The notes: generated by a model from the letters alone, not told the origin. Counted from the stretch's first letter, positions 658 through 63,296 are shown. The stretch is DNA of 64,000 nt from Isurus oxyrinchus (GCA_026770705.1 JANJGN010000121.1:930001-994000); one strand, 5' to 3'. Made by a program: numbers and translations.

Positions 658-939
658 ATGCACCACGGAATCTCTCAATTACTTCTCTTGGTATGATTAA
701 CTCTTCATCGATCAACATAATTGAGGGGAATTCTGCAGTGATAATCTGCTCTGTCGAGAGCTTCCCAGCTTCTAACCTGACGTGGCGACATCTTAATGTC
801 CCAATGAACAGAACAAGTTCCAACAATGAGCTGTGGTTGGTGATTCCTCACGTTACATCCAGGGACACTGGAGACTATCAGTGTGTGGCAGAGAATGAAC
901 ATGGAGCAGTGGAGGGGTTCATAACCATCACTGTGGAAT
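658..939 (+). CDS. Gene A (Siglec-like): Ig C2-set exon, 282-bp type, copy 1
   Basis: tttttag|AT...GTGGAAT|gtgagt; 282 bp, phase 1-1. Encodes YAPRNLSI...IICSVESFPASNLTW...DTGDYQCVAENEHG...ITITVE, with Ig Cys, Trp and DxGxYxC motif. Confidence 0.9.
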
Positions 940-1715
940 GTGAGTTACTGCAAACTTCAACATCACTCTCACACAGACACACACACACACACACAAAAAC
1001 ACAACATGCACTCGTGTAGACACATACATGCACATTTACACACACAAACATACGCATGCAAAAATATACACAGAAACATACACACACTCAACTCACACAC
1101 ACACACTCACACATGCACACACATACACATACACATGTACACACATTCACTCATGCACAGAAATATACACAAAAACACACTCACATATGCGCAAACACAT
1201 ACATGCACACACAGACACATGCATGCATACTCACACAAACATACTCACATATGTACAAACACAAACACATACACATAAACACGCGTGAGGTCCCTCTTCT
1301 CTCTCAGGGCCGCACTGGAGTCTCGGTGTCAGCTCTGATTCTGTGTTGAAGGAAGGTAAACTCCAGATCAACAAGACCCTGAATTGGATGAGCAACCTCC
1401 TGAACAGAGAATGGTAGATTTACCCCTCAGTGCTCCATCAATCAAATACAATTCAATGGCTTTCAATCCCTTGGGGGCATCTTGAGAGTGTTAAACGATG
1501 TTTCTTTCATTCTAGATGGACAGCAACTCTACTGGTGGGAGAATGCAACTGCAGTGTGACAGTTTACATAGGAAATGCCCATTATAAATGTGACAGTAAT
1601 TTTTCATGAGGGAAGGTACCTGGAAAGGCATTCCAACATCAGATACAGAGAGATGATGCATGGAGTCTTGCTGCGCACTATGCTTGCTCACATTAAAATC
1701 TTTATTTATTTTTAG

Positions 1716-1997
1716 ACACACCACGGAATCTCTTAATTACTTCTCTGGATATGATTAACGTTTCATCGATCAATATAATTGAGGGGAATTCTGCAGTGAT
1801 AATCTGCTCTGTCGAGAGCTTCCCAGCTTCTAACCTGACGTGGCGACATCTTAATGTCCAAATGAACAGAACAAGTTCCAACAATGAGCTGTGGTTGGTG
1901 ATTCCTCACGTTACATCCAGGGACACTGGAGACTATCAGTGTGTGGCAGAGAATGAACATGGAGCAGTGGAGGGGTTCATAACCATCACTGTGGAAT
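1716..1997 (+). CDS. Gene A: Ig C2-set exon copy 2
   Basis: tttag|AC...GAAT|gtgagt; 282 bp, open, near-identical to copy 1. Confidence 0.9.
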
Positions 1998-2488
1998 GTG
2001 AGTGTACACAGAATTCAACATCTCTCTCAGATTTGAACACATATACACAAATGCACACCCACACGCACACACAAGCACTCACTGCACTGGAGTCTCGGTA
2101 TCAGCTCCAATTCTGGATGGAACGAAGGTAAACTACAGATCAACAAGTCCCTGAATTGGATGAGCAACCTTCTGAACAGAGAATTGTATATTTACCCCTC
2201 AGTGCTCCATTGATCAAATACAATCATTGCCTGTCAAGCCCTTGGGGACATCCTGAGGATGTGAAAGCAAATTCCTTTCATTCTAGGTGGACAGCACCTC
2301 TACTGGTGGGAGAATGTAACTGCAGTTTGACTGTTTACATAGGCAGTGCCCATTATAAATTTGACAGTGGAAGTTATATGGAGTGGAGGGACCTGGCTAT
2401 GCATACAGACATCAGATACAGAGAGATAATGCATGGAGTCTTGCTGTAAACTGTGCTTGCTCACATTAAACACTTGATTTGTTCTTAG

Positions 2489-2770
2489 ATGCTCCACAGA
2501 ATCTCTCATTTACTTCTCTTGATATGATTAACGCTTCATCGATCAATATAATTGAGGGGAATTCTACAATGATAATCTGCTCTGTCGAGAGCTTCCCAGC
2601 TTCTAACCTGACGTGGCGACATCTTAATGTCCCAATGAACAGAACAGGTTCCAACAATGAGCTGTGGTTGGTGATTCCTCACGTTACATCCAGGGACACT
2701 GGAGACTATCAGTGTGTGGCAGAGAATGAACATGGAGCAGTGGAGGGGTTCATAACCATCACTGTGGAAT
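2489..2770 (+). CDS. Gene A: Ig C2-set exon copy 3
   Basis: cttag|AT...GAAT|gtgagt; 282 bp, open. Confidence 0.9.
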
Positions 2771-3587
2771 GTGAGTGTGGAGATACATTTGTTTGTTTGT
2801 TGTCTCCGTGGTCTCCGTGGAGCCATTGGGATCGTGTTGTTTTTAATCCAGTTTTCTTCAATCCTCGCTCAGTCCACGTTATCCACACATCCAATTTTTC
2901 CTCTCCCTTTCTGTTTTTGCTCTCAGTTTCTCCTTCAATGGTTGTGAGGACAAGGCTGTCAGGTCTTCGTTTCCAATCTCCGTACTTGATGACCTTTCTC
3001 TCTCTAACTGTCCTGAACAACCCTTTTAATTGCTGAACTTCTCATTCTTTAATTGATAAATATTATATATAAATGTTACATGGATTACTTTGAAATGCAA
3101 TACCTGTATTCACAAATTGCTTAGAAATTACTAAACATTCAACAGCCAATGAAGCATTATCGAAGTGAGCACACTTTTGTAATGTAGGAAACACAGGTAC
3201 TGATTTGTGCACAGCAAGATCCCGCAAACCACCGTGTGATAATGACCTGATAGTTGATTATTTCAGTGAGGTTGGTTGTTACATGTGTAGAGACTACATA
3301 CCCTTTAGGGAGGGAAGCATGTCTCGATGTGGATGTGACTCCAGTCTCAGACACCAACATGGTTAACTCTTACCTGCCCTCTGAACTGGTCTCCCAGTTT
3401 GGGACAAACCAGTGGTTCAGGAGGAAGACCCCCCACCACCTTCTCAAGGGGAAACTAGGGATGGACAATAAATGTCAGCATTGCCCGAGAATGAGTATTT
3501 AAACACTGAGTGAGTGTATCGCTTCTCGAGATACATCGGAGCATCATTGTAAACCTGTAGTGCAGTAATTAATGGTTGTTTTTACAG

Positions 3588-3683
3588 GTAGAGACTCCAG
3601 TAAATGGACAGTAGGATTGTTCACGGCTGGGATCATGTTGAGTGTTTTCCTGGCTGGAATCTTCATCTTCATCTGTTGAGAAA
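3588..3683 (+). CDS. Gene A: transmembrane exon with premature TGA (3677-3679)
   Basis: tttacag|GT...GAAA|gtaagt. Reads CRDSSKWTVGLFTAGIMLSVFLAGIFIFIC*. It is 96 bp against 97 bp for the gene D paralog (TGT TGA GAA A vs TGT GTG AGA AA). Confidence 0.8.
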
Positions 3684-4561: not shown

Positions 4562-4643
4562 GAGAAAGACAGCGATGGAGGAGAGAGTTTCAGGGACCAG
4601 TGACATTGCATTGACCCCCAGTCCACTCTCTGTGAAGCACCAG
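4562..4643 (+). CDS. Gene A: cytoplasmic exon 1
   Basis: ttattgcag|G AGA AAG...CAC CAG|gtacag; 82 bp, phase 2-0; RKTAMEERVSGTSDIALTPSPLSVKHQ. Conserved paralog at 61830-61911. Confidence 0.8.
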
Positions 4644-4862
4644 GTACAGGAGCTGTTTACACACACTCCAAAGCTTCAACCTCAGTGTGTACACAACACA
4701 TATACCAGATTCTCAGCCGGGTTACACACAGATATCGCCCTGTGAAGTCAGCAATGGCTCAGTGGTCAGCACTGTCTCTCGCTCCCAGCCTCTGTCTCCC
4801 TCCATCACTCGCTCTTTGACCAGAAACCTGAACACATTAATGACAAGGCACCTGATGTCAGA

Positions 4863-7558
4863 ACTGAGGGAGTGCTACACTGTCAGAGGGTCAGTACTGA
4901 GGGAGTGCTGCAATGTCAGAGTGTCAGTACTGAGGGAGTGCTGCACTGTCGGAGGGTCAGTACTGAGGGAGTGCTGCACTGTCAGAGTGTCAGTACTGAG
5001 GGAGTGCTGCACTGTCGGAGGGTCAGTACTGAGGGTGTGTTGCACTGTCAGAGGATCAGTACTGAGGGAGTGCTGCACTGTCGGAGGGTCAGTACTGAGG
5101 GAGTGCTGCACTGTCAGAGGGTCAGTACTGAGGGAGTGCGGGACTGTCAGATGGTCATTACTGAGGGAGTGCTGCACTGTCAGTGGGTCAGTACTGAGGC
5201 AGTACTGCACTGTCGGAGGGTCAGTAGTGAGGGAGTGCTGCACTGTCGGAGGGTCAGTACTGAGGGAGTTGTGCACTGTCAGAGTGTCATTACTGAGGGA
5301 GTGCTGCACTGTCGGAGGGTCAGTACTGAGGGAGTGCTGCACTGTCGGATGATCAGTACTGAGGAAGTGCTGCACTGTCAGCGGGTCAGTACTGAGGGAG
5401 TGCTGGACTGTCAGAGAGTCAGTACTGAGGGAGTGCTGCACTGTCGGAGGGTCAGTAGTGAGGAAGTGCTGCACTGTCAGAGGGTCAGTATTCCGGGAGT
5501 GCTGCACTGTCAGAGGGTCAGTACTGAGGGAGTGCTGCACTGTCAGAGGGTCAGTACTGAGGGAGTGCTGCACTGTCAGAGGGTCAGTAATGAGGGAGTG
5601 CTGCACTGTCAGAGGGTCAGGATTGAGGGAGTGCTGCACTGTCAGAGGGTCAGTATTGAGGGAGTGCTGCACTGTCAGAGGGTCAGTACAGAGGGAGTGC
5701 TGCACTGTCGGAGGGTCGGTACTGCGGGAGTGCTGCACTGTCAGAGGGTCAGTACTGAGGAAGTGCTGCACTGTCAGAGGGTCAGTAGTGAGGGAGTGCT
5801 GCACTGTCAGAGGGTCAGTACTGAGGGAGTGCTGCACTGTCAGAGGGTCAGTAGTGAGGGAGTGCTGCACTGTCAGAGGGTCAGTGCTGAGGGAGTGCTG
5901 CACTGTCAGAGGGTCAGTACTGAGGGAGTGCTGCAATGTCAGAGTGTCAGTACTGAGGGAGTGCTGCACTGTCGGAGGGTCAGCACTGAGGGAGTGCTGC
6001 ACTGTCAGAGGGTCAGTACTGAGGGAGTGCGGGACTGTCAGATGGTCATTACTGAGGGAGTGCTGCACTGTCAGAGGGTCAGTACTGAGGGAGTACTGCA
6101 CTGTCGGAGGGTCAGTAGTGAGGGAGTGCTGCACTGTTGGAGGGTCAGTACTGAGGGAGTTGTGCACTGTCAGAGTGTCATTACTGAGGGAGTGCTGCAC
6201 TGTCGGAGGGTCAGTACTGAGGGAGTGCTGCACTGTCGGATGATCAGTACTGAGGAACTGCTGCACTGTCAGCGGGTCAGTACTGAGGGATTGCTGGACT
6301 GTCAGAGAGTCAGTACTGAGGGAGTGCTGCACTGTCGGAGGGTCAGTAGTGAGGGAGTGCTGCACTGTCAGACGGTCAGTATTTTGGGAGTGCTGCACTG
6401 TCAGAGGGTCAGTATTCCGGGAGTGCTGCACTGTCAGAGGGTCAGTAGTGAGGGTGTGCTGCACTGTCAGAGGGTCAGTATTGAGGTAGTGCTGCACTGT
6501 CAGAGGGTCAGTATTGAGGGAGTGCTGCACTGTCAGGGGGTCACTACTGAGGGAGTGCTGCACTGTCAGAGGGTCAGTACTGAGGGAGTGCTGCACTGTC
6601 AGAGGGGCAGTATTGAGGGAGTGCTGCACTGTCAGAGGGTCAGTATTGAGGGAGTGCTGCACTGTCAGAGGGTCAGTATTGAGGGAGTGCTGCACTGTCA
6701 GAGGGTCAGTACTGAGGGAGTGCTGCACTGTCGGAGGGTCAGTACTGAGGGAGTGCTGCACTGTTAGAGGGTCAGTACTGAGGGAGTGCTGCACTGTCAG
6801 AGGGTCAGTAGTGAGGGAGTGCTACACTGTCAGAGGGTCAGTGCTGAGGGAGTGCTGCACTGTCAGAGGGTCAGTACTGAGGGAGTGCTGCACTGTCAGA
6901 GAGTCAGTAGTGAGGGAGTGCTGCACTGTCAGAGGGTCAGTGCTGAGGGAGTGCTGCACTGTCAGAGGATCAGTACTGAGGGAGTGCTGCACTGTCAGAG
7001 GGTCAGTATTGAGGGAGTGCTGCACTGTCAGAGGGTCAGTACTGAGGGAGTGCTGCACTGTCAGAGGGTCAGTACTGAGGGAGTGCTGCACTGTCAGAGG
7101 GTCAGTACTGAGGGAGTGCTGCACTGTCAGAGGGTCAGTATTGAGGGAGTGCTGCACTGTCAGAGGGTCAGTATTGAGGGAGTGCTGCACTGTCAGAGGG
7201 TCAGTATTGAGGGAGTGCTGCACTGTCAGAGGGTCAGTACTGAGGGAGTGCTGCACTGTCAGAGGGTCAGTAGTGAGGGAGTGCTGCACTTTCAGAGGTT
7301 CAGTACTGAGGGAGTGCTGCACTGTCAGAGAGTCAGTACTGAGGGAGTGCTGCACTGTCAGAGGGTCAGTACTGAGGGAGTGCTGCACTGTCAGAGGGTC
7401 AGTACTGAGGGAGTGCTGCACTGTCAGAGGGTCAGTACTGAGGTAGTGCTGCACTGTCAGAGGGTCAGTATTGAGGGAGTGCTGCACTGTCAGAGGGTCA
7501 GTACTGAGGGAGTGCTGCACTGTCAGAGGGTCAGTATTGAGGGAGTGCTGCACTGTTG
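4863..7558 (+). repeat. 33-bp minisatellite (ACTGAGGGAGTGCTGCACTGTCAGAGGGTCAGT)n, about 80 copies
   Basis: Tandem repeat visible directly; explains the 11-aa repeat ORFs on both strands. Confidence 0.97.
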
Positions 7559-7740: not shown

Positions 7741-7989
7741 GGTAAACAGAACGTGCTGATTACTGAGCCCCGGAACACAACCAGAGCCACAACTAGTGAG
7801 GGGGAGACCCCAGCTCCCCGGGATCTCTCTGAAGGTCCAGTGGGAGGCGATGTTGGACATGGGAACCCTGACAAACCCGACGAGCTTTTCTACGCCAACA
7901 TCAACTTTTCAAAGCTGCCCGGCGGTGACAGGACTGTGCATAGGAGCGAGGACACGGAATACGCACAGATCAGGTTCCAGAAAAACTGA
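7741..7989 (+). CDS. Gene A: terminal cytoplasmic exon with ITIM (LFYANI) and ITSM-like TEYAQI
   Basis: ttctctgtag|GGT AAA CAG...AAC TGA; 249 bp, phase 0. The motif pair resembles CD33-related Siglec tails. Confidence 0.88.
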   Translation, partial: GKQNVLITEPRNTTRATTSEGETPAPRDLSEGPVGGDVGHGNPDKPDELFYANINFSKLPGGDRTVHRSEDTEYAQIRFQKN

Positions 7990-8174: not shown

Positions 8175-10250
8175 GTTAATACAAGGTGAGGTGAGAGTGA
8201 CTGCCTTTGACATCAAGGCTGCATTTGACCGAGTTTGGCATCTAGGAGCCCGAGCATAACTGGAGTCAATGGGAATCAGGGGTGGTACGAAAGTATAATA
8301 ATTTGCATAATATTTTCCTGGTTTGTTGTAAACTAGGTTTATGGGTGTGAGTGTAGATGGGTCTGTCTGTGTGTTTTAATTACACCTGGAGTCAGGTAGA
8401 CTGCAAGCTTGAGATTATCAAAAGAAGCTAGATGTAGAAATGTACTTGAAATGCTAATGAGTGAACATGGAGGCTGTGTTAACATGTAAGGTGTGAAGGG
8501 GTTGTTTAGATTTCAAAGGGATGTCGGTCTGTTTAGGACAAGCCCAATAAGCAAAGCTAAGGAGTTTTTTTTAATTTTACCCAAACTTCATTGACAATAT
8601 TGGCAACAAGAAAGTTTATATTATGGGAAAGGTACAGTTCCAAAGAATTTACACATCAAAGAGAGAGAAACATGTATAAAGGAGAATGAAAGGCTATGTT
8701 GGGGGACATGTAAGATCTAACAGGAGTGTGTGAAACAGGCTTGAAGAAGCCTCCAGGCATTTGTGCATAAGTTTGTTATGTTCAGTAAATAAAGTTGGAG
8801 AAATCCATTTAGAATTCCACTGTCAAGTGTGTGCTGTGTTAACTCGCTGGATTTGTTTTTAATCTAAAATTGTATTTTGGACTGTTGCCTTAAACAGGCT
8901 CTGTAACTGGGAGTCAGGTTAATTAGGAATTTTAGAATTTATTTTAGTTGTAACTAACCGTGGTATTATGTCTGTGCTTGAAATCTTTTATTTTGTTAAT
9001 AAATATCCTAATCAAATTTTTAAAATCTCTAAAGGTTGTTGTCAACTCATTACTCCAGAATTCAGTGCACGCATCTTGTAATAAATACAAATTGCAAACT
9101 ATTGTGATAGCATGACCAATTTTCCCTTGTGGATTTGGAGCACCAAGCACACATCATCTGCCATGTCATGTCACAGGGAAAACTCTCCACTCGTTGGATT
9201 CATACCAAGTACAAAGGAAGGTGGTTGTGGTTGTTGGAGGTCAGTCATCTCAGTTCCAGGACATCACTGCAGGAGTTGCTCAGTGTAGTGTCCTAGGCCC
9301 AACCATCTTCAGCTGCTTCAGCAATGACATTCATTCTATCAGATGGTCAGAATTATGGATGGTCACTGATGATTGCACAACGTTCAACATCATTCATGAC
9401 TCATCAGATACTGAAGCAGTCCATGTCCAAATGCAGCAAGACCTGGACAATATCCAGGCTTGGCCTGACAAGTGGCAAGTAACATTCATGCCACACAAGT
9501 GCCAGGCAATGACCATCTCCAACCAGAGAGAATATATCCATCTCCCCTTAATGTCCAATGGCATCACCATTGCTGAATCCCACACTATCAACACTCTGGG
9601 GGTTACCAATGACAAGAAACTGAACTGTACTAGCCATATAAACACTGTGACTATAAGAGCAGGCCAGAGCCTGGGAATCCTGTGGTGAGTAACTCACCTC
9701 CTGACTCCCCAAAACCTGTCCACGAACCTCAAGGCACAGGTCAGAAGTGATGGAATACTCTCCACTTTCCTAGATGTGTCCAGCTCCAACAACACTCAAG
9801 AAGCTCGACACCGTCCAGGACAAAGCAGCCCCGCTTGATTTGCGCCCCGTCCACAAACATTCTCTCCCTCTACAACTGACGCACAGTGGCAGCAGTGTGT
9901 GTACCATCTACAAGATGCAACGCAGTGAGTCACCAAGCCTCCTTAGACAGCACCTTCCAAACACATGATCACTACCATCTCGAAGGACAAGGGCAGCAGA
10001 CACATGGGAACACCACCACCTGGAAGTTCCCCTCCAAGTCACTCACCATTCTGACTTGGAAATATATCACCGTTCCTTCACTGTCGCTGGGTCAGAATCC
10101 TGCAACACCCTCCCAAACAGTTCTGTGGGTGTACATACACCACAGGGACTGCAGCAGCTCAAGAAGGCAGCTCACCCCCATATTCTCAAGGACAATTAGG
10201 GATGGGCAATAAATTCTGGCCTAGCCAGTGTCAGTGAATGAATAAAAAAA
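8175..10250 (+). mobile_element. CR1-clade LINE 3' part (degenerate RT C-terminus and tail), interrupted by a solo LTR
   Basis: GVAQCSVLGPTIF...MVTDDCT matches GVPQGSVLGP...FADD. LINE sequence gggaatcagggg|gggaaaactctcc resumes across the 8283-9175 insertion. Confidence 0.85.
8283..9175 (+). mobile_element. Putative solo LTR (TG...CA) inserted in a LINE
   Basis: Begins TG, ends CA, splits contiguous LINE sequence, contains AATAAA; related to 60938-61694. Confidence 0.6.
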
Positions 10251-14445: not shown

Positions 14446-14699
14446 TGACATGTGTGTCTGTGTGAACGTGTGTGAATGTGTGTGTGTGTACCTGTGTGCA
14501 TGTGTATTGTTGCATCTTTATTATAAATGTTATTTAAAAATAGTGATCACACAAGCCTAGTTTCTAAGGAAATGAAAATGCAAACAATTTACAGTAAAGT
14601 GAAACGTACAGGAATAATCTATTTTGAGCTGATGATATATAATTATACATGATGCATCTTGCTAATTTCAAACATCATCTGAAATATGGTAGGTCTGAC

Positions 14700-15090
14700 A
14701 GAGCAGCATTTTCTCAGTGCTCAGCCTCTGACAGTGCAGCACTCCCTCAGTACTGACCCTCTGACAGTGCAGCACTCCCTCAGTACTGACCCTCTGACAG
14801 TGCAGCATTCCCTCAGCACTCACCCTCCGACAGTGCAGCACTCCCTCATCACTGACCCTCTGACAGTGCAGCACTCCCTCAGTGCTCACCGTCTGACAGT
14901 GCAGCACTCCCTCAGTGCTCACCCTCTGACAGTGCAGCACTCCCTCAGCACTGACCCTCTGGGAGTGCAGCACTCCCTCAGTACTGACCCTCCGACAGTG
15001 CAGCACTCCCTCAGTACTGACCCTCCGACAGTGCAGCACTCCCTCAGTACTGACCTTCCAACAGTGCAGCACTCCCTCAGCACTCCCTCA
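14700..15090 (-). repeat. 33-bp minisatellite (minus strand); the same junction recurs at 16915-17100
   Basis: Tandem units followed by ctccctcactggggaga...ttttga.ctgaaa and GA/GT-rich DNA at both sites. Confidence 0.9.
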
Positions 15091-44641: not shown

Positions 44642-44746
44642 CTGATTCCTCAAAGCCCAACCACGCTCACAGTTTTCATAAACAGGACCTCGATATTCAT
44701 CAACACGATGGTTCGATTTGATTCCTGCTTTCCCCTCGCCTCTCTT
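44642..44746 (-). CDS. Gene D: predicted cytoplasmic exon (PVYENC), paralog of the terminal exon
   Basis: ctctattacag|AAG AGA GGC...AAT CAG|gtgagt; 105 bp, phase 0-0; KRGEGKAGIKSNHRVDEYRGPVYENCERGWALRNQ. Confidence 0.6.
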
Positions 44747-45257: not shown

Positions 45258-45342
45258 CCAGGACCTGTCCGACTGCTCGCCTGGGGAGGAACTGCCCACA
45301 CGCTCTGCTTGGGCTGAATGACCTCTTCCTGTGCTGCTCCCT
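45258..45342 (-). CDS. Gene D: predicted cytoplasmic exon 1 (phase 2-0)
   Basis: acacacag|A GGG AGC...TCC TGG|gtaagt; 85 bp, open (GSSTGRGHSAQAERVGSSSPGEQSDRSW). The phase bridges the TM exon and the 44746 exon; the acceptor is weak. Confidence 0.5.
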
Positions 45343-46046: not shown

Positions 46047-46143
46047 TTTCTCACACACTTGAAGATGAAGAATCCACTCAGTCCAACACTCAAACAGATT
46101 CCAGCTCCAAGCAATCCTGCTTACCATTCATTGGAATCTCGCC
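46047..46143 (-). CDS. Gene D: TM exon with in-frame TAA (46121-46123) before the hydrophobic segment
   Basis: tttacag|GG CGA GAT TCC AAT GAA TGG TAA GCA GGA...GTG AGA AA|gtaagt; RDSNEW*AGLLGAGICLSVGLSGFFIFKCVR. Confidence 0.82.
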
Positions 46144-47408: not shown

Positions 47409-47690
47409 GTTCCACAGTGATGGTTATGAATCCCTCCACTGCTCCATGTTCATTCTCTGCCACACACTGATAGTCTCCAGTGTCCCTGGATGTAACGTGA
47501 GGAATCACCAACCACAGCTCATTGTTGGAACTTGTTCTGTTCATTGGGACATTAAGATGTCGCCACGTCAGGTTAGAAGCTGGGAAGCTCTCGACAGAGC
47601 AGATTATCACTGCAGAATTCCCCTCAATTATATTGATCGATAAAGCGTTAATCACACCAAGAGAAGTAATTGATAGGTTCCGTGGTGTAT
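47409..47690 (-). CDS. Gene D: 282-bp C2 exon (second)
   Basis: atttag|AT ACA CCA CGG...GTG GAA C|gtgagt; open. Confidence 0.9.
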
Positions 47691-48790
47691 CTAAATACAA
47701 ATAAAGGTTTCATTGTGAGCAAACACAGTGCACAGCAAGACTCCATGATACATCTCCCTCTATTTGGTGCCTATGTGCATTTCAAGGTTTCTGTCCTGTT
47801 TTAAGTTCCTATGTCAACTTTTATAATGGTCACTGCCGGCGTTTTTCTTTTTGTACATTCATGGGAAGTGGATGTATCTATCTAGACCAGCATTTATTAC
47901 CCATCCCTAATTGCCCTTGAGGAGGTGGTGGTGAGTTTTTCACCCCCACAGAATTCCCAGGCTCTGACCGGCTCCTGTAGCCACAGTATTTATGGCCGGT
48001 CCAGTTAGTTGTTTGGGTAACATCCCCCAGGATGTTGATTGTGGGGGATTCAGTGATGGGAAAGTGATTGAATATCAAGGGGAGATGGTTAGATTCTCTC
48101 TTGTTGGAGATGATCACTGCCTGGTGCTTGTGTGGTGTGAACATTACTTGTCATTTCTCAGTCCAAGCTGAGTGTTGTTCAGCTCTTGCTGCGTGTGGAT
48201 ATGTAAACTGTCACGCTGTAATTACAGCCTTCCACCAGAGGAGACACTGTCGGGCTAGGAGAAAAGAAAATGTCTTTCACATCATCAGGATGTTCACAGG
48301 GATTTGACAGCGGAGGAATTGCTTTAGAATAATGGGGTATTGAGTGATAAACCTACAATTCTCTGTGCAGGGGGCTGCTCGTCCAATACAGGGTCTTGTT
48401 CAGCTGATGTCGTCAGTGTTTCAGAGCAGAATCTGGATCAACACTCCAGTGCAGCACAGGGAGAACAGACAACTCACACATGTCTGTGTGTGTGTGAGCA
48501 AGCACACGTGTGATTCTGTGTATGTTTCCTTCTGTGTGTGTGCATGCAGGTGTACACACCTGTGCACATGTGGGATTCAACATGAATGCTTGTTTGTGTG
48601 CNNNNNNNNNNNNNNNNNNNNNNNNNNNNNNNNNNNNNNNNNNNNNNNNNNNNNNNNNNNNNNNNNNNNNNNNNNNNNNNNNNNNNNNNNNNNNNNNNNN
48701 NNNNNNNNNNNNNNNNNNNNNNNNNNNNNNNNNNNNNNNNNNNNNNNNNNNNNNNNNNNNNNNNNNNNNNNNNNNTTTGCAGTAACTCAC

Positions 48791-49072
48791 ATTCCACAGT
48801 GATGGTTATGAACCCCTCCACTGCTCCATGTTCATTCTCTGCCACACACTGATAGTCTCCAGTGTCCCTGGATGCAACGTGAGGAATCACCAACCACAGC
48901 TCATTGTTGGAACTTGTTCTGTTCATTGGGACATTAAGATGTCGCCACGTCAGGTTAGAAGCTGGGAAGCTCTCGACAGAGCAGATTATCACTGCAGAAT
49001 TCCCCTCAATTATATTGATCGATGAAGCATTAATCATATCAAGAGAAGTAATTGAGAGATTCTGTGGTCCAT
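48791..49072 (-). CDS. Gene D: 282-bp C2 exon (first)
   Basis: tttttag|AT GGA CCA CAG...GTG GAA T|gtgagt; open. Confidence 0.9.
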
Positions 49073-49916
49073 CTAAAAACAAATAAACATCAATTAAGTT
49101 ACACTGACTGTGAAGCACTTTGAAAGACACTGAGAATGTGAAAGGTTTGATATCAATATAGGTTCTTTCACCACAAAGCCCATAATCCAGCCAGACACCT
49201 CAGTTCAGTACTGAGGGTGTGCTGCACTGTGGGAGGGTCAGTACTGAGGGAGTGCTGCACTGTCAGAGGGTCAGTACTGAGGGAGTGCTGTACTGTCGGT
49301 GGGTAAGTACTGAGGGAGTGCTGCACTGTCAGAGAGTCAGTACTGAGGGAGTGCTGCACTGTCAGAGGTTCAGTACATAGGGACTGCTGCACTGTCTGAT
49401 GGTCAGTACAGAGGGGTTGCTGCACTGTCGGAGGGTCAGAAATGAGGATGTGCTGCACTCTCAGAAGGTCAGTACTGAGTGGGTGCTGCACTGTCGAAGA
49501 GTCATTACTGAGGGGGTGCTGCACTGTGGGAGGGTCAGTACTGAGGGAGCACTGCACTGTTGAAGGGTCAGTACTGAGGGAGTGCTGCACTGTCGAAGGG
49601 TCAGTACTGAGGGAGTGCTGCACTGTTAGAGGGTCAGTACAGAGGGAGTGCTGCACTGTCAGAGGGTCAGTACTGAGGGAGCACTGCACTGTTGAAGGGT
49701 CAGTACTGAGGGAGTGCTGCACTGTCAAAGGGTCAGTACTGAGGGAGTGCTGCAGTGTTGGAGAGTCAGTATTCAAGGACTGCTGCAGTGTCAGAGGCGG
49801 ATTTGTATCAGTTAAAGACTATTGATTTGTTGCTAAACACAATGCAGTTGTGGGATCTTGCAGTGTACTATGTAGAGCATTCTAGCTAATGTAGATGGAA
49901 GGGTGTCTGTTCTTAC

Positions 49917-50201
49917 CTTGCACAGTTAGTACGAGGGTCTTCTCCGATGAAACAGATGGATATCTCACTCTGCAGCTTAGAGTGTGTCCGTGGTGTTTGA
50001 GTGATGGGATCAGGGTCAGAACAGAAGTATAGGTCAGAGTGACACCATGATGAGTTACAGTGTTTGAGACTGATCCAGGTACGTCAGTGGGAATGTCCCA
50101 GGATAAGACAGGTGCTGCTGTTCCACTGCACGTTGTGTTGAAGGTGCAGCTTACATCCACACGCTCTCCTGCATTAATTTCAGCAGGGAATATCGTGAAA
50201 T
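49917..50201 (-). CDS. Gene D: Siglec domain-2 C2 exon (285 bp, in-frame 12-bp deletion relative to gene C)
   Basis: ctgttag|AT TTC ACG ATA TTC CCT...GTG CAA G|gtaaga; open. Confidence 0.88.
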
Positions 50202-51231: not shown

Positions 51232-51597
51232 CAGAAATGTGAAGCCGGGTTACAGGGTAATAGTTATTGCGCGGACCATTGTCAAATTCTATTCTGAAAA
51301 AATAAGGTCCTGCATCTTCCCGTCTGATGTTGTTTATAATCAGGGAACAGTTGCCATCTTTCAGGTCTCCAGACAGCCGGGTCCGATGGCGGAACCGTGG
51401 TAACTCGTGACGGTGATCCTTGGAGTGAAAGGCTATGGACAATCTTCTCCGTTCCTCATTATTAAACCAGACTCCACCTCGTGGTTGGCTGTCCAAATGT
51501 GCTGGATAACTGTAATGACATGGAATCTGTACACACGAACCTTCCTGCGCTGTCACCTCTCGTGGAGTATCACCTTTCCACTCTTGTGACAGTCCAA
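51232..51597 (-). CDS. Gene D: intact Siglec V-set exon with the sialic-acid-binding Arg (YFFR)
   Basis: 366 bp, phase 1-1: VGLSQEWKGDTPREVTAQEGSCVQIPCHYSYP...GVWF...RFRHRTRLSGDLKDGNCSLIINNIRREDAGPYFFRIEF...TRLHIS. Confidence 0.92.
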
Positions 51598-55080: not shown

Positions 55081-55120
55081 CTTGGAGAAGTGACAGGAGG
55101 AAGTATGATTTACCGATCAT
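55081..55120 (-). CDS. Gene D: leader exon MIGKSYFLLSLLQ(G)
   Basis: ATG...CTC CAA G|gtaata; 40 bp, phase 1, joins the V exon in frame. Confidence 0.82.
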
Positions 55121-56359
55121 TGTCCACTCCCAGATATTTCCTCAGCTTATAACTCTGAAGATCTGAAAGAGAAAGGAGTTAATGAGACTTCACCTCTTGT
55201 CCGACAGCTCTCGAGAGATCAGAACTGCTTTTAGACAATATCTTCACAGACTAATTTGATTCTCTGTGGGATGATAGGTGCTCTGCAGAGAGGTACAAGG
55301 CTTTCAGAAAGAAAAACAATGAAGGACTTGCATTTCTATAGCACCTTTCACCACCTCAGGATGTCCCCAAGCTCATGTCCCTTGAGCTAGAAAGATGTTC
55401 TGTACAACAGACTTGAGCCTCACACCCAGATCTCAATAATCAGTAGAAATCTTTCAAAGGCATCAATCATTGGAATCTGTCTTTATAAAGTCACAACATC
55501 AACAAAGGACGGTGTTGGTGGTGGAAGTGAATTCCAATCGTTCCGTTACTTACCCAGGACCTGTCCGACTGCTCGCCTGGGGAGGAACTGCCCACACGCT
55601 CTGCTTGGGCTGAATGACCTCTTCCTGTGCTGCTCCCTCTGTGTATTTAATGAGAAAGAGCTGATGTATCTCTGTGAGACAAAATGAGGAAGTTGGAACA
55701 AAGTGACAGAACAGCACTTTGCTGTGCACTGACAGTAAACCTTGTGTCTGTATAAGAATATAAGAACATTACAAGTAGGATGTGTTTTTTCTTGAACTTA
55801 CTAATGAAATTGGTGCAATGAAAGGGGCTTTTATTGTTCGAAGAGCTGGAGTTCAGAAGACCGAGTGATACAATGGAAAATTTACATTCAAAGGGAAAGC
55901 TAGCTATATAAAGGAAGGAGCTTGTGTGTGTGAGGCAGGAGCATTTCAGACCTAACCAGCCTGTAGCCTCCAACCAACTAGCAAAGGAACCTCATTCAGA
56001 ACTCGTATTGTCAAATGTGCTTTGCCTGGTGTCTATATTATGTCAATGGTTCATTGTTGCCTTAGTAGAGATTTACGTCGGGGTGATTAATTGGGGATTT
56101 GTTAAAAATTTATTATAGTAGTTACTTGTAGCCAATGTGTATGTGTTAAATTTGTTGTTAAATTAATAAATGGTTTATTTAGTTTTATATAAAAAAACTC
56201 AAAAGCCTCGGTCGTCTTATTCCTGCTGAATTCAAAGTCTTCATCTCAAAATTACAATCAGCAAAATTGGGTTATGACAGTTGTTTCAATTTTCCCTCTG
56301 GGATTTGAACAACTCAGCCTTTACCCTTGGCTGTGTCATAGTCCCTAATACACCACGTC

Positions 56360-58019: not shown

Positions 58020-58760
58020 TATATTCATTCGTCCATGGGAAGTGGGCATCACTGGCTAGGCCAGCATTTATGGCCCATCCCTAATTACCTTGAGAAGGTG
58101 GTGGTGAGCTGCCTTCCTGAACCTCTGCAGTCCATGTGGTGTAGGTACACCCACAATGCAGTAAGAGAAGGAAGTCCAAGATTTTGACCCAGTGGCAGTG
58201 AAGGGACGGCGATATATTTCAAAATCAGGATGATGTGTGGCTTGGAGGGGAACTTCCAGGTGGTGGTGTTCCCCTATGTCTGCTGCCCTTGTCCTTCTCA
58301 ATGGCAGAGGTCGTGGAATTGGAAGGTGCTGTTGAAGGAACCTTGCTGAGTTGCTGAAGTTCATATTGTAGATGGGACACACTGCTGCCACTGTGCATTG
58401 ACGATGGAGGGAGTGAGTGTTGCTGTGATTGAGGGGGAGACAATCAAGCGGGGCTGCTTTGTCCAGGGTGGTGTCAAGCTTCTTGAGTGTTGTTGGAGCT
58501 GCACTCATCCAGGCAAGTGGAGAGTATTCCATTCACACTCCTGCCTTGTGCTATGTCAATGATGGACAGGATTTGAGGAGTCAGGAGGTGAGTTACTCAC
58601 CGCAGGATTCCCAGCCTCTGAGCTGCTCTTGTAGCCACAATGTTTATGTGGCTGACCCAGTTCAGATTCTCGTCAATGGTAACACCCAGGCTGTTAACCA
58701 TGGGGGATCCAATGATGGTGCTGCCATTTAATGTCAAGGGGAGATGGTTAGATTCTCTCT
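58020..58760 (-). mobile_element. CR1-clade LINE 3' fragment; a plus-strand copy lies at ~62035-62510
   Basis: MEYSPLAWMSAAPTTLKKLDT... belongs to the same family as 9750-10210. Confidence 0.85.
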
Positions 58761-60314
58761 TGCGTGCATTCAGATTAAGAAACTTTCTGTCTTTTCCCCA
58801 TTTCCCCTACTCTGACCTTATTTGCTGGGACACTGGTTGATGCTGGTTTCAGTCTCAGTTTGTCTCAGTTGGTCACACTCTGGCCTCCGTCTCGAGACTG
58901 ATGTTCCCTGTTGGTAGTGACAGTGATGGGGGTGTTGGGGAGGGTGTGTATATTGACCCCACTGGTCCCCCTCCCCTGCTCCGCCATTCTGTCCTGGGAG
59001 ACCCGCCAGGATCCTTGTTCCAGCTGTGATGGGCAGCCCTTCCACACTTTCCTGTGGGCCCCGCACTTCATGTGTAAAAGCGCTAAGTTAGAGCAGGGAT
59101 GGAGAAATGAACAGGGGGCGTGGGATGAGTGTGGGGGTCTCTGTGGGGTGGGGGAGGTTTCACCAGCTCTCTGTCTTTGCAACATCATAACCGCAGTGTG
59201 AAGATTGTCCCCATTCCCTGTATCTTAATAATATTGTAAAGACAACTGGGAGATGTGCTGCAGTCTCTGAGAAAGAATTTGGTGTGCTTACAGCACCACC
59301 ACTGGCAAGAGAGTGTAAGTACAGTGTGACATGTTTACATGGGAAATTTTCATGATAAATGTGGACACAGGAATTTACATAATTTGGTGGAGGAAATGCA
59401 ATGACATGAATTAACAGATTGGAGCAGGAAGGTTGTCCCAGAGTAAGATGTTTAATAAAAATATATCTGTACAGAGTTGTCTGGGCATTTCAATCCCTTG
59501 TGACAATAAATGTAATATTATAGAAAATGCAAAAGCTTCTTGTAATCTATCACAGAATAAACAAGTTGCAGAATTCAGAAAGCACATTCTGAAATGTTAA
59601 CAAAGTTCAATGACGTCACATTTCTGCTAATTACTATTCGGCCATGTTGGCTGCACGCAGTCAGGCAGTCCCTCGGTTGTGATGTGTCCACACAGCAGGA
59701 CTGGGATGCATCAGCATCAAAGGACATGCTTAGTTGTTGCTGTGCAATGCATTTATTGTGAGCCTGTTGCACACACGCCCTGTCGAAGGAGCATCCATGG
59801 TTCCATTCTGAATCGAGGCAGATCAAATTTACTACAACAACTTGCATTTATATAGCACACATAATGTAGCAAGCTGTCCCAAAGCTCTTCAGGAGATTGT
59901 TAACCACATATAAATCCATCGCAGAGACACATAAAGAGATATTAGGGACAGGTGACCAAAAGCTGAGTTAACAAAGGCAGTNNNNNNNNNNNNNNNNNNN
60001 NNNNNNNNNNNNNNNNNNNNNNNNNNNNNNNNNNNNNNNNNNNNNNNNNNNNNNNNNNNNNNNNNNNNNNNNNNNNNNNNNNNNNNNNNNNNNNNNNNNN
60101 NNNNNNNNNNNNNNNNNNNNNNNNNNNTCCCCAATGACTTAGCATCAAGTCGTCACTGGGGAAACATTTCATTCCAAACCACACCAACCATATACCCATT
60201 CAGTCCCTTCCTCCCTCTGTCCCCCTCTCCCCCAGTGGGTTGTCTCATGTTCCCAGGAAACTTAATCTCTGCCCCCACCCACAAACCTCCTCACCCCCAC
60301 TCCCCGTTTCACAC

Positions 60315-60563
60315 TCAGTTTCGCTTGAATCTGATCTGTGCGTATTCCGTCTCCTCTTCCCTGTGGACAGACCCATCACCACTGGGCACCCTGAAGACTT
60401 GGGGATTGGCATAGAGAAAGTCCGCGGGATTGTCAGGGTTCCCATGTCCAACATCGCCTCCCACTGGACCTTCAGAGAGACCCCGGGGAGCTGGGGTCTC
60501 CCCCTCGCTAGTTGTATCTCTGGTTGTGTTCTGGGGCTCAGTAATCAGCAAGTTCTGTTTACC
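60315..60563 (-). CDS. Gene E: terminal cytoplasmic exon, copy 2 (FLYANP, TEYAQI)
   Basis: ctctgtag|GGT AAA CAG...CGA AAC TGA; 249 bp, paralog of 7741-7989. A shared 3'UTR block lies at ~59540-59660. Confidence 0.82.
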   Translation of the reverse strand, partial: GKQNLLITEPQNTTRDTTSEGETPAPRGLSEGPVGGDVGHGNPDNPADFLYANPQVFRVPSGDGSVHREEETEYAQIRFKRN

Positions 60564-60937
60564 CTACAGAGAAATGGAAACAGAAGACATCCTCACATCA
60601 TTTACTGGCACTGATAGGGTTAAATTATTGTGCAGCGTCGTTAGTGTCAGTCGTGGCTCAGTGGGTTTAACCCTCTCTCATGTCATCTGAAAGAAACCAC
60701 CTATGGCAGTGCAGTGCTCCCTCAGTACTGACCCTCTGATAGTGCAGCACTCCCTCAGTACTGACCCTCTGACAGTGCAGCACACCCTCAGTACTGACAC
60801 TCTGTCAGTCTCACACTCCCTCGGTAATGACTCTGGTGAGTGACGGCTTGGATTCTGCACTCAGGTGCCTGGTGTGAGGCTCAATAATATGAATCTTGTA
60901 ATCAGAGAGAGGATGAGAGAGAGGGATAGAGACAGAG

Positions 60938-61694
60938 TGTTATGAATCTTTTAATGTATGTAATGTAATTGGAAATGGTCTATTTAAAAAGAGGTTTAGT
61001 CTGTGGGTGTGTTTGTGTGTGTTTCAATTGGATTAAAGCCAGCCAGTCTGGGTACTTTGATGTATAGTAGTTTTGAGATGTAAACAATGAGGTAAAGTGG
61101 TAATTTGCATTTTTAAATAGAGCATTCAATGTCCGGGGGTGAAATCTTAAACCAATCAACATTTATATTAAGAATAAAATTGAGACAATGAAAGGGGATT
61201 TATTGTTAGAAGAGGTGGAGTTCAAAGGTCCTGATGATACAATGAGAATTTACATTCAAAGAGAAGCACTGGGTATAACTTGAGCAGTTTTGTGTGTGCA
61301 GAGCAGAGGCTTGTAACATCAAAGCAGCTGTAAGCCTTCACCTGTCTGCAAAGGAACCAAAGTGAAAGGAACCTCATTTGGAATTTGTGAGGTGAAAATG
61401 CTTTGCTGGAATCTGCTTAAATTCTATGGGTTATCTTAGAGGAGATTAGTTTGGGAATTTGTTAAAAAGTTATGATAATACTAGTTTGTAGCCAAGTGCA
61501 TATGTTTAACTAGTGCAAATTAATAAATGCTTCATGTAGTATGATATAAAACCATCCCGAGAACTGGTGGTCTTATTCCTGAATTTAGAGCTGCATCTCA
61601 AACATTCCACTGGGAAATATAGGTTATGACAGTTGTTTAAAGTTTCCCTCTGGGATTTTAAACAACAGCCTTTACCAGTTGCTGTGTCATAACA
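60938..61694 (+). mobile_element. Solo LTR with TGTTATGA...TCATAACA termini
   Basis: 8-bp inverted termini starting TG and ending CA, internal AATAAA; absent from the gene A paralogous intron. Confidence 0.7.
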
Positions 61695-61829
61695 GAGAGA
61701 CAGCATGATACTGAACCATTGCTGACTCCACAGGTACAAATCAGTGGGTAACTGGGCTGGGAATCTGGGACACGTGTTGTCTACACACTGAGATTGAAGC
61801 TTTGGAGTGAGTGTAAACAGCTCCTGTAC

Positions 61830-61911
61830 CTGGCGCTTCACAGAGAGTGGACTGGGGGTCAATGCAATGTCACTGGTCCCTGAAACTCTCTCCTCCATCG
61901 CTGTCTTTCTC
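61830..61911 (-). CDS. Gene E: cytoplasmic exon 1 copy
   Basis: 82 bp, RKTAMEERVSGTSDIALTPSPLSVKRQ, same splice sites as 4562-4643. Confidence 0.8.
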
Positions 61912-63047
61912 CTGCAATAACACAATATCACACTGTGGTTATCATATAGCAGAGAGTCAGTGCAGCACAGACACAGCCCACTGTAACCTTACACCAACGA
62001 CTGGACTGTCACTTTCAATCACTTCTACACAAAGCACAGAATCAAGAAGCTTGACACCATCCAGGGCAAAGCAGCCCGATTGATCGACACCCCCATCCAC
62101 CACATTAAACATTCACTCCCTCCACCATGAACACACAGTGGCAGCAGTGTGTGTACCATCTACAAGATGCACTGCAGCAACTCAGCAAGGCTCCTTCAAC
62201 AGCACCTTCCAAACCCACGACCTCTACCATCTAGAAGGACAAGGGCAGCAGACACATGGGAACACCACCATCTGGAAGTTCCCCTCCAAGTCACTCACCA
62301 TCCTGACTTGGAAATATATCACCGTTCCTTCACTGTCGCTGGGTCAAAATCCTGGAGCTGCCTCCCTAACAGCACTGTGGGTGTACCTACACCACATGTA
62401 CTGCAGTGGGTCAAGAGGGCAGCTCACCACCACCTTCTAAAGGGGCAATTAGGGATGGGCGTTAATGCTGACATCACCAGTGACAGCCACATTCGATGTA
62501 AGAATTAAAAATCTCACAGCTCAATGTATTTATTGGGAGCCTGCGGCACACACACCCTGTCGAAGGAGCCTTTGTGGTTCCATTGTTAATCGAAGCAGAT
62601 CAGAGTTACTACAACAACTTGCATTTATATAGCACCTTTAATGTAGCAAAATGTCCCAAGGCTCATCCGGGGATTGTTAGTCACATCTTCACCTGACTCT
62701 GAGGCACATGAGGAAATATTAGGGACAGGAGACCAACAGCTGAGTCAACAAAGTCAGTTATTAATGGGCATCTTAAAGGAGGAGCTGGAGATAGAGAATG
62801 AGATACAGACAGAGAGAGAAAGACTGAGAGAGAGAGAGAGAGAGACACAGTGAATCTCGGTCCCCAATGGCTCAGCATCCAGTCCTCTCTGGAGAAGCAT
62901 TTCATTCCAAACCACACCAACCGCAGCCCAATTGCATCCCTTCCTCCCTCTCTCCCCCTCTCCCCCAGTGGGTTGTTTGCTGTTCCCAGGAATCTCAATC
63001 CCTACCCCCACCCACACACCTCCTCACTCCCACTCCCCATTTCTCAT

Positions 63048-63296
63048 TCAGTTATGCTCGAACCTGATCTGTGCGTATTCCGTCTCCTCTTCCCTGTGGA
63101 CAGACCCATCACCACTGGACATCCTCAAGACTTGGGGATTGGTGTAGAGAAACTCTTCAGGTTTGTCGGCGTTCCCATGTCCAACATCGCCTCCCACTGG
63201 ACCTTCAGAGAGACCCCGGGGAGCTGGGGTCTCCCCCTCGCTAGTTGTGTCTCTGGTTGTGTTCCGGGGCTCAGTAATCAGCACGTTCTGTTTACC
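63048..63296 (-). CDS. Gene E: terminal cytoplasmic exon, copy 1 (FLYTNP, TEYAQI)
   Basis: 249 bp, open, same acceptor; the upstream exons lie outside the window. Confidence 0.82.
   Translation of the reverse strand, partial: GKQNVLITEPRNTTRDTTSEGETPAPRGLSEGPVGGDVGHGNADKPEEFLYTNPQVLRMSSGDGSVHREEETEYAQIRFEHN

Follow-up and report, generated by a model that had tools for sequence, protein, structure and literature searches.

The 64,000-nucleotide stretch of Isurus oxyrinchus DNA analyzed here (the window) is, taken as a whole, probably best explained as part of a large, fast-turnover cluster of CD33-related-Siglec-like receptor genes. Its Siglec-type genes combine common outer exons with four distinct signalling ends, one of them an arginine-bearing membrane anchor, and every gene assessable in the window (A, C and D) carries a disabling lesion as assembled. 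A Siglec-type multigene cluster of a cartilaginous fish with birth-and-death features, as an earlier note on this DNA had proposed, is supported; the exons and motifs listed in that note were found, with several details corrected.

Exon anatomy and signalling ends

The exons and fragments of the window are as follows (+ and -, strand).

658-939, +, first of the three C2 (I-set) stalk exons of gene A in the window; 282 bp, phase 1-1, AG/GT borders, open frame
1716-1997, +, gene A C2 stalk exon, copy 2; 282 bp, placed by exon borders, frame and stalk-exon comparison
2489-2770, +, gene A C2 stalk exon, copy 3; 282 bp, placed by the same evidence
3588-3683, +, gene A transmembrane (TM) exon, 96 nt, aligned with the gene D TM exon
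4562-4643, +, gene A membrane-proximal cytoplasmic exon (RKTAMEERVSG...KHQ), 98.8% identical to the gene E copy
7741-7989, +, gene A last exon with ITIM and ITSM, then stop; colinear with CD33 and turtle Siglec C-termini
21144-21431, +, fragment of a divergent V-set-like exon ("gene B"), with tblastn identities of 27-35% to V domains of the family
34636-34775, -, Arg-TM exon of gene C, ending ...ILHVILILGIRAVIFLVAVVITIAGVCVW ERQTVKGSRQTV and a stop; good acceptor, TM Arg
36446-36598, -, remnant of a gene C C2 exon, reduced to its 3' 153 nt, so that the first half with the first Cys is missing
36922-37218, -, exon for the second Ig domain of gene C (C2-set with three Cys), intact; both borders match RNA joints
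38076-38452, -, V exon of gene C (377 nt), interrupted by two TAA codons and two single-base frameshifts
39154-39192, -, gene C leader exon (MIGKSTSSCHFPK); 1-bp deletion at 39179, phase altered, hydrophobic core lost
40000-40065, -, orphan D-type cytoplasmic exon fragment, upstream of the gene C leader
43172-43288, -, gene D last exon (...DDLYANCDFAKDSVYGNL, then stop), matching the P0011 and P0007 tails
44642-44746, -, additional cytoplasmic exon of gene D (...EYRGPVYENC...), phase 0-0, with an equivalent in C. punctatum P0007
45258-45342, -, gene D first cytoplasmic exon (GSSTGRGHSAQAERVG...SW)
46047-46143, -, gene D TM exon, containing TAA 46121-46123
47409-47690, -, gene D C2 stalk exon 2; 282 bp, placed by exon borders, frame and stalk-exon comparison
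48791-49072, -, gene D C2 stalk exon 1; 282 bp
49917-50201, -, exon for the second Ig domain of gene D (C2-set, C-x5-C and third Cys), as in CD33 domain 2
51232-51597, -, gene D V-set exon, intact; three Siglec-type Cys
55081-55120, -, gene D leader exon (MIGKSYFLLSLLQ)
55554-55638, -, D-type first cytoplasmic exon, an orphan copy lying upstream of the gene D leader; same peptide as gene D's own exon
60315-60563, -, gene E tail exon E1 (FLYANP...TEYAQI, then stop); orthologous tail in C. carcharias P0019
61830-61911, -, gene E membrane-proximal cytoplasmic exon
63048-63296, -, second E-type tail exon E2 (FLYTNP...TEYAQI, then stop), upstream of the gene E cytoplasmic exon

We propose a gene plan built from exon modules: the leader would come first, then a V-set lectin domain carrying the sialic-acid arginine, then a C2-set domain that has the additional Siglec cysteine. 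A variable number of 282-bp stalk exons would follow, held similar among genes perhaps through gene conversion or unequal crossing-over, and each gene would close with one of the four 3' cassettes. What these receptors bind, which adaptors they pair with and in which direction they signal we infer from the families involved. The A-type TM and ITIM/ITSM tail would be inhibitory through phosphatase recruitment. The gene A last exon places an ITIM, LFYANI (7885-7902), ahead of an ITSM, TEYAQI (7954-7971), the proximal ITIM and distal ITIM-like/ITSM arrangement that CD33-related Siglecs have at the C-terminus, and it is colinear with the C-termini of Tupaia CD33 (LHYASL...TEYSEI; E 7e-4) and a turtle Siglec (E 3e-3). 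The D-type TM and YxN tail (YEN, YAN and YGN) might provide Grb2-type docking. The gene C exon encodes, as first read, a TM Arg and a 12-residue tail free of Tyr; this short-tailed form would be activating, paired with an ITAM adaptor such as DAP12. The E-type tail had been taken for an A-type tail with a degraded ITIM. FLYANP or FLYTNP followed by TEYAQI is indeed present, but YANPQVF is conserved in a Carcharodon carcharias protein, which argues for a stable tail type rather than local decay; the E-type cassette is a variant that combines YANP with an ITSM. No TM or ectodomain exon of gene E was found in the window.

Other elasmobranchs have each of the four tail types among their NCBI models: the A-type in P0003, P0015 and P0016, the D-type in P0011 (C. 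carcharias) and P0007, the E-type in P0019, and the Arg-TM end in P0006, P0097 and P0158 (S. torazame) and P0024 (C. punctatum). The V-set-like fragment of gene B is truncated by a retroelement ahead of the F strand, and the rest of its exon was not found within the window. None of the five assembly gaps interrupts an exon: gap 48602-48775 begins 15 nt past the donor of the first gene D C2 exon and could conceal additional C2 repeats, gap 59982-60127 lies 188 nt beyond the E1 stop with flanks colinear with the E2 copy, and the other three are located in repeat-rich spacer.

Homogenization appears to have acted on the stalk exons. Five complete 282-bp C2 exons are present, three in gene A (+) and two in gene D (-), the first of which in gene A matches Pfam Ig_3/I-set (E 5e-13). 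Pairs of these exons differ at 7-14 of 282 nt, with 1-4 synonymous differences per pair and 17 of the 24 variable sites within the first 60 nt. Because genes A and D are 95-97.5% identical in these exons and far less alike in the flanking introns (12-85%), concerted evolution is indicated, and the comparison supports homogenization of the stalk exons between genes. Near-identical C2 exons had also been attributed to gene C, which retains only the 153-nt remnant. Genes C and D were likewise said to share leader, V and second-domain exons and introns. They are 80-91% alike, exons and introns equally, which has the appearance of ordinary duplication, not homogenization; their V exons, the sole two in the window, have only ~71% of residues in common, diverging in the CC' loop and the G strand.

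Disabling lesions and Arg-TM transcripts

Gene C as assembled is decayed in its leader, V and C2 exons and provides no intact activating partner. Its V exon is broken by in-frame TAA codons at 38361-38363 and 38110-38112, by an extra base at 38298 and by an extra T within the run 38141-38147, which directly precedes the sialic-acid Arg codon and leaves it out of frame as assembled. Genes A and D each show a single event. The gene A TM exon is 1 nt shorter than that of gene D and than the reading of orthologues, and this 1-bp deletion brings a TGA (3677-3679) immediately after IFIFIC, where Cetorhinus P0003 continues as IFIFICVRK; the ITIM and ITSM noted earlier are present, but they lie behind a stop and the tail is unreachable as assembled. 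The triple-YxN tail and stop reported for gene D are both present, the TAA occupying a position where C. carcharias P0011 has Lys. We propose that the window's copies as assembled represent the "death" side of birth-and-death, gene C being decayed, A frameshifted into a stop as its TM exon ends, D interrupted by TM nonsense and E left with tail modules only.

The lesions might instead be assembly or polishing errors or private alleles, with A, C and D intact in the species as a working inhibitory, activating and YxN set, which we hold to be unlikely but worth serious weight. The base at 38298 is missing in contigs of runs X1, X8 and X6, and 38110 is G in X1 and X8, giving TAC (Tyr) instead of a stop; no support for the window's letters at these two sites was found in the aligned contigs of other runs, so that some lesions may indeed be of this kind. 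Three lesions are 1-bp indels, and RNA-like contigs are 99% (second domain) and 97% (TM) identical to gene C. On the other side, three lesions are substitutions to TAA, and the lesions are clustered: gene C has five point lesions in ~420 coding nt as well as a half-deleted C2 exon, a deletion too large for a base-calling error, whereas ~3.5 kb of other exons (five C2, the V exon of D, two second-domain and three tail exons) have none. The best DNA run contains just 56% of the stretch's words, which makes the absence of the window's version weak evidence.

The same RNA-like contigs, from two organisms, are spliced V to second domain to Arg-TM at the exact gene C exon borders, bypassing the C2 remnant at 36446-36598; the joints 34775|36922 and 37218|38076 are confined to runs X6 and X17. 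A link between a Siglec ectodomain and the Arg-TM exon, on which the earlier note hinged, is thereby found in RNA-like contigs as well as in NCBI models of other sharks (P0006, P0024 and P0097). Since the contigs cover the gene C V exon at its last 23-25 nt only, and the leader variant in X6 is unlike the leaders of both C and D, these transcripts probably derive from a near-identical paralog or allele rather than from the window's gene C copy.

The Arg-TM form thus has the traits of an activating partner, namely a TM Arg, a 12-residue tail and ectodomain-TM transcript joints, the window's gene C itself being damaged. That it is not activating, its arginine serving another membrane partner or the protein acting as a tail-less decoy, seems to us rather improbable. 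The D-type and E-type tails are signalling ends beyond the ITIM/ITAM scheme and adaptor pairing of the Arg-TM form is putative, which leaves room for such a role. However, the cassette is also retained in models from S. torazame and C. punctatum, where the TM segment including ILILGIRA is almost invariant while the ectodomains vary, as would fit a constrained intramembrane contact, and a basic TM residue with a short tail is a hallmark of DAP12/FcRγ-coupled receptors such as Siglec-14 (PMC4042635).

Siglec identity of the domains

The gene D V exon is, by its sequence, a Siglec V-set domain with the sialic-acid arginine and a predicted lectin function. Among solved structures its closest matches are Siglec-5 (E 6e-16), sialoadhesin (4e-15) and Siglec-7 (5e-14), followed by Siglec-8, Siglec-10, CD33 and MAG (E 6e-16 to 1e-12 with the closest); CD22 (E 7e-7) and Siglec-15 (E 4e-6) score lower. 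In this ranking by score, CD33-type structures stand above CD22 and Siglec-15, with sialoadhesin and MAG similar to the CD33-type. Pfam assigns V-set and Ig_CD22 above cut-off. The Arg codon (51293-51295) falls within YFFRIE, whose aligned counterpart at the ligand arginine position is YFFRVE in Siglec-5 and YNFRFE in sialoadhesin. The Siglec cysteine pattern is present in the V domain (GSC..IPC and GNCSL) and in domain 2 (SCTFNTTC and LSC), where the gene D cysteines, including C-x5-C, align with CD33 domain 2 and predict an inter-domain disulfide.

One paper on teleost Siglecs describes CD33-related Siglecs as absent from fish genomes (PMC7226832). Mammalian CD33-related Siglecs and the shark genes are alike in the V-set F-strand arginine, the three V cysteines, the domain-2 C-x5-C and the C-terminal ITIM (L-x-Y-A-x-I/L) with distal T-E-Y-x-x-I; they differ in that V identity is merely ~33-41%, that the shark stalk consists of tandem near-identical exons and that models of this family in other species have several V domains per protein. 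Library proteins matching the family number 1503 at E<=0.001, the best being elasmobranch models that NCBI names Siglec-8/10/12/13/14 or CD33-like. That these are general IgSF adhesion or CD22/MAG-like genes with a superficial likeness to paired Siglecs is very unlikely: NCBI names do vary (MAG-like, CD22-like, hemicentin-like, pIgR-like) and the stalk exon is a generic I-set domain, but the V exon scores Siglec-5, -7, -8, -10 and CD33 well over CD22 and Siglec-15, and the domain-2 cysteines and the ITIM-ITSM C-terminus both align with CD33.

Comparison with known receptor systems

The ITIM/ITSM tail exon (7741-7989) and the Arg-TM exon (34636-34775) lie 27 kb apart, so that opposite ends are linked in one cluster. 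The claim of a Siglec-5/14-like pair, with a homogenized ectodomain on opposite ends, is not borne out: within the window, no ITIM gene and Arg-TM gene were found to share a nearly identical lectin domain. The V domains of C and D diverge as described, and the gene A V exons fall beyond the limits of the window.

The closest relatives are Gnomon models with family and tail cassettes common to the window, among them XP_041037179 and XP_041037180 (Carcharodon carcharias), XP_072326180 and XP_072325011 (Scyliorhinus torazame), XP_072409577 (Chiloscyllium punctatum) and XP_078389734 (Cetorhinus maximus). The E-type and D-type models of C. carcharias have consecutive accessions on one scaffold record, and E and D likewise adjoin in the window. 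These models are automatic predictions with names borrowed from mammals. The system had been thought undescribed, and no shark paper on a paired Siglec-like system was found in the searchable literature, nor any literature analysis of pairing, conversion or tails for these models, but automatic annotation already names Siglecs in many elasmobranchs (sharks, rays).

Paired IgSF multigene clusters with ITIM versus charged-TM ends and birth-and-death turnover include the teleost NITR and LITR and the skate MDIR genes; to our knowledge no sialic-acid lectin is among them, and their ectodomain families differ from that of the shark cluster. Xenopus CEACAM pairs combine similar ectodomains with ITIM or charged-TM ends in multigene birth-and-death clusters, and there too the ectodomain family differs and the proteins are not sialic-acid lectins (PMC5112662). 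In primates, Siglec-5/Siglec-14 and Siglec-11/Siglec-16 are linked genes in which neighbours undergo gene conversion, and activating copies are commonly null or damaged (PMC4042635). As in the window, one type has ITIM/ITSM-like Tyr motifs and the other a basic TM residue with a short tail. Conversion homogenizes the first two domains (V, C2-1) in primates, whereas the homogenized part in the shark is the membrane-proximal stalk exon. At least four tail types stand against two, and the putative activating cassette of the shark consists of one terminal exon, which S. torazame and C. punctatum have in conserved form.

Siglec-type genes in the window

On sequence grounds the window genes are of Siglec type, because of the matches of their V domains, Pfam families and second domains and of the protein libraries, for which homology searches were run exon by exon. 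The gene D V exon (121 residues) matches the solved V domains of Siglec-5 (6e-16), sialoadhesin (4e-15) and Siglec-7 (5e-14), followed by those of Siglec-8, Siglec-10, CD33 and MAG, with far weaker scores for CD22 (7e-7) and Siglec-15 (4e-6), and its YFFRIE aligns to the motif carrying the ligand arginine. Pfam assigns the V exon to V-set and Ig_CD22, the second domain to C2-set_2 and the stalk exon to Ig_3/I-set; a Pfam search of the tail exon and of the "gene B" fragment gave no family match. The second domain aligns to domain 2 of CD33, the third cysteine and the C-x5-C pair included. HMMER returned 1503 matches at E<=0.001 among 1.84 billion representatives. The best have 60-78% V-domain identity, are named Siglec-8/10/11/12/13/14, CD33-like or MAG-like by NCBI, and come from Carcharodon, Cetorhinus, Scyliorhinus, Mustelus, Chiloscyllium, Stegostoma, Hemiscyllium, Pristis, Hypanus, Mobula and Rhinoraja; among those looked up, the closest non-chondrichthyan matches are turtle and mammalian Siglecs (V identity 33-41%). 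These matches also mark the host as an elasmobranch. Several elasmobranch protein models (among P0001-P0006) have 2-4 tandem Siglec V domains per protein, and the gene C V domain resembles the first, that of gene D the second, V domain of the Cetorhinus model P0003.

Exon borders were taken from AG/GT sites and reading phase. Gene A is already within its stalk at the window start; since it lies on the + strand and genes C, D and E on the - strand, A and C converge tail to tail.

Exons of the Siglec-type genes
658-939, 1716-1997, 2489-2770, +: gene A C2 (stalk) exons
3588-3683, +: gene A TM exon
4562-4643, +: gene A cytoplasmic exon
7741-7989, +: gene A last exon
34636-34775, -: gene C Arg-TM exon
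36446-36598, -: gene C C2 remnant
36922-37218, -: gene C second domain
38076-38452, -: gene C V
39154-39192, -: gene C leader
40000-40065: orphan copy of D-type first cytoplasmic exon, just upstream of gene C leader
43172-43288, -: gene D last exon
44642-44746, 45258-45342, -: gene D cytoplasmic exons
46047-46143, -: gene D TM
47409-47690, 48791-49072, -: gene D C2 exons
49917-50201, -: gene D second domain
51232-51597, -: gene D V
55081-55120, -: gene D leader
55554-55638: orphan copy of D-type first cytoplasmic exon, just upstream of gene D leader
60315-60563 (E1), 63048-63296 (E2), -: gene E tail exons
61830-61911, -: gene E cytoplasmic exon (with E1 and E2 the only parts of gene E present)

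The orphan exon at 55554-55638 encodes the same peptide as gene D's own first cytoplasmic exon, and since the orphans lie upstream of the C and D leaders, what remained of the 3' end of an older D-type gene was part of the duplicated unit. A divergent V-set-like exon in the region 21042-22812, 27-35% identical to the family V domains, ends at 21431 before the F strand; the remainder of this exon was looked for and not found. Judged by eye, the frames that follow it resemble a retroelement gag, and one of them has a zinc knuckle of CCHC type.

The window has 46% G+C, five N runs and abundant satellites, chiefly of a 33-bp unit. The 2.7-kb array of this unit lies inside the last intron of gene A, and another array lies in gene D, in the intron that separates the second domain from the first C2 exon; arrays of this kind might favour unequal exchange.

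Repeats of the window
4857-7556 (2.7-kb array), 14694-15084, 16914-17048, 28455-28693, 30699-31195, 32822-33305, 39645-39915, 49205-49797, 63598-63812, both orientations: 33-bp satellite
43387-44512: 24-bp satellite, 47 copies, 90% matches, between gene D's two last cytoplasmic exons
17375-20019: tandem array of a GA-rich 72-bp unit
27168-28392: tandem array of a 37-bp unit
22814-23222, 40053-40356, 41209-41826: tandem arrays of a 44-bp unit (three sites)
9116-9685, 46767-47369, 58024-58760, 62042-62508, both orientations: interspersed repeat, four copies, 74-84% alike; the frame at 9116-9685 looks reverse transcriptase-like by eye

Self-BLAST after tandem-repeat masking left a small set of paralogous blocks, in which the stop-to-stop frames are Ig-domain exons. 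None of the five gaps cuts an exon. The gap at 48602-48775 starts 15 nt past the donor of gene D's first C2 exon, which is therefore complete, although collapsed C2 repeats could be hidden in it. The gap at 59982-60127 lies 188 nt past the E1 stop codon, with flanks colinear with the E2 copy (59745-59981 with 62522-62758; 60128-60677 with 62861-63410), and the remaining three fall in the repeat-rich spacer that separates the V-like fragment at 21 kb from gene A. Mis-assembly of haplotypes was ruled out, as duplicated blocks longer than about 315 bp have at most 97% identity and the likeness within the C/D and E1/E2 pairs of units is 80-92%. Chance was likewise rejected.

Signalling cassettes and lesions

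The earlier note had distinguished four different signalling ends, and these hold up; each recurs in other elasmobranch models, so none is a local invention. In the A-type, a TM exon and a proximal exon precede the last exon, which encodes LFYANI and TEYAQI; the A-type tail is also found in the models Cetorhinus P0003, Stegostoma P0015 and Hemiscyllium P0016 and aligns colinearly with Tupaia CD33 (E 7e-4) and a turtle Siglec (E 3e-3) at their extreme C-termini. The D-type has a different TM and a tail with YEN, YAN and YGN, matching C. carcharias P0011 and C. punctatum P0007. The E-type sequence FLYANPQVF…TEYAQI matches C. carcharias P0019 (LLYANPQVF…TEYAQI); the gene E ITIM had been taken as degraded, a reading that the common YANPQVF contradicts, indicating that the +3 proline is a conserved trait of this tail lineage and not fresh decay. 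The Arg-TM exon of gene C encodes ILHVILILGIRAVIFLVAVVITIAGVCVW, then ERQTVKGSRQTV, then a stop, and in three models from S. torazame and one from C. punctatum the cassette is near-invariant, following Siglec ectodomains. A protein search with the Arg-TM region of the elasmobranch model P0006 returned at least two proteins, a count that has little bearing on the cassette's spread given word and length limits. Judging by motif class, ITIM/ITSM tails would recruit phosphatases, YxN tails would provide Grb2-type docking and the TM arginine would pair with ITAM adaptors.

The local copies carry lesions as assembled. In gene A the TM exon has 96 nt versus 97 nt in gene D, and its reading is IFIFIC-TGA, against IFIFICVRK in Cetorhinus, so that the downstream frame is lost and the protein as assembled would stop before its ITIM tail. 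The pre-TM stop reported for gene D is indeed present, at the seventh codon of the TM exon, where C. carcharias has Lys. Gene C is damaged throughout: a base missing from the leader gives MIGKSTSSCHFPK and the wrong phase; the V exon (377 nt) has TAA at 38361-38363 and 38110-38112, an additional base at 38298 and, immediately ahead of the arginine codon, an additional T at 38141-38147; and only the last 153 nt of the C2 exon remain, the first half with its first cysteine being lost. The near-identical 282-bp C2 exons described for A, C and D are thus a property of A and D, not of C. At position 38110 all contigs of the DNA-like runs X1 and X8 read G (TAC, Tyr), and base 38298 is missing from the contigs of X1, X8 and the RNA-like run X6, which removes one frameshift; two gene C lesions are accordingly without support elsewhere, which is weak evidence either way, the best DNA run having 56% of the stretch's words.

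Taken as a whole, the window belongs to a multigene cluster of Siglec type, whose exons are modular, whose signalling cassettes are swappable and which evolves by birth and death. The local gene copies stand largely on the "death" side, with exons left as orphans, stop codons and a stalk exon of which half is deleted, and because these copies look damaged the window is not the best locus for functional work.

Transcripts of the Arg-TM arm

The alignments to 34450-39450 used contigs throughout, from four public runs. The earlier note's activating gene presupposes a transcript linking an ectodomain to the Arg-TM exon, and such V to second domain to Arg-TM joints are present: 37218|38076 connects V with the second domain, and 34775|36922 connects the second domain with Arg-TM, each with GT..AG ends on the - strand. 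Run X6 (organism A) and run X17 (organism C), both RNA-like, show the two joints, and the DNA-like runs X1 and X8 lack them; the joints confirm the gene C exon borders and the skipping of the C2 remnant. The joint contigs are 99% identical to the gene C second-domain exon and 97% identical to the TM exon, and they match the V exon over its last 23-25 nt only; X17 replaces 38282-38361, and X6 has a leader variant unlike those of C and D. These differences argue that the transcript source is probably not this gene C copy, and a near-identical paralog or allele most likely gave rise to the joints. The activating-type arm thus exists and is expressed in the species, not demonstrably from this gene C copy. 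X6 contigs also cover about 1.2 kb of intron (34748-35942) contiguous with the Arg-TM exon and unspliced at the acceptor, which could stem from a retained intron, from an internal promoter or from DNA present in this run.

Probable stalk-exon conversion and comparison with paired Siglecs

Comparing the five full C2 exons two at a time gives 7-14 differing positions in 282 nt and only 1-4 synonymous differences, and 17 of the 24 variable sites fall within the first 60 nt. The flanks, taken 200 nt to each side, have 12-85% identity, mostly below 60% for A versus D. For genes on opposite strands this pattern is explained better by exon-limited conversion or recent exon transfer than by selection alone. 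Short patches of 96-99% identity also join the A and E cytoplasmic exons, and the D cytoplasmic exon and its orphan copy at 55554-55638. Between C and D, identity is 80% in the V exon, 91% in the second domain and 81-89% in introns, the same degree in exons and introns, as would be expected from ordinary segmental duplication; their V domains have about 71% of residues in common, with differences clustered in the CC' loop and G strand. The homogenised ectodomain with opposite signalling that had been proposed therefore does not extend to the lectin domain, none being homogenised between an inhibitory and an activating gene here. What the window shows is apparent conversion of stalk exons, not of the lectin domain.

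Paired Siglecs are a textbook case of the arms race between host and pathogen; those described in the literature that we found are mammalian. A teleost study reports CD33-related Siglecs to be absent from fish genomes (PMC7226832), a 2025 review mentions paired receptors and does not name sharks or cartilaginous fish (PMC13358205), and the whale shark genome paper merely lists Siglecs among Ig families. Searching the literature for Siglecs, DAP12 and paired receptors of sharks or other cartilaginous fish, we came upon no paper on shark Siglec pairs, but automatic annotation already predicts Siglec-type genes in many elasmobranchs.

We tentatively propose, at somewhat less than even chances, that elasmobranchs have their own large CD33-related-type Siglec system, in which ITIM/ITSM, YANP/ITSM, YxN and Arg-TM cassettes are shuffled onto ectodomains, conversion across genes, opposite strands included, keeps the stalk exons uniform but not the lectin domain, and the Arg-TM cassette, conserved in S. 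torazame and C. punctatum, is an old module for adaptor coupling. If true, on/off Siglec signalling would be older than the split from bony vertebrates, or convergent, and "fish without CD33-related Siglecs" would be valid for teleosts only. A shark cluster with the same logic, combining a lectin V domain with its arginine, ITIM/ITSM tails and a conserved arginine-TM cassette spliced in RNA, would push the paired design back to, or show its reinvention in, the oldest jawed-vertebrate lineage and would supply a natural example of how exon cassettes are shuffled. What defines Siglec-5/14 is that an inhibitory and an activating gene share a homogenised lectin domain (PMC4042635), whereas in the shark window it is the stalk exons, not the lectin domain, that appear homogenised.
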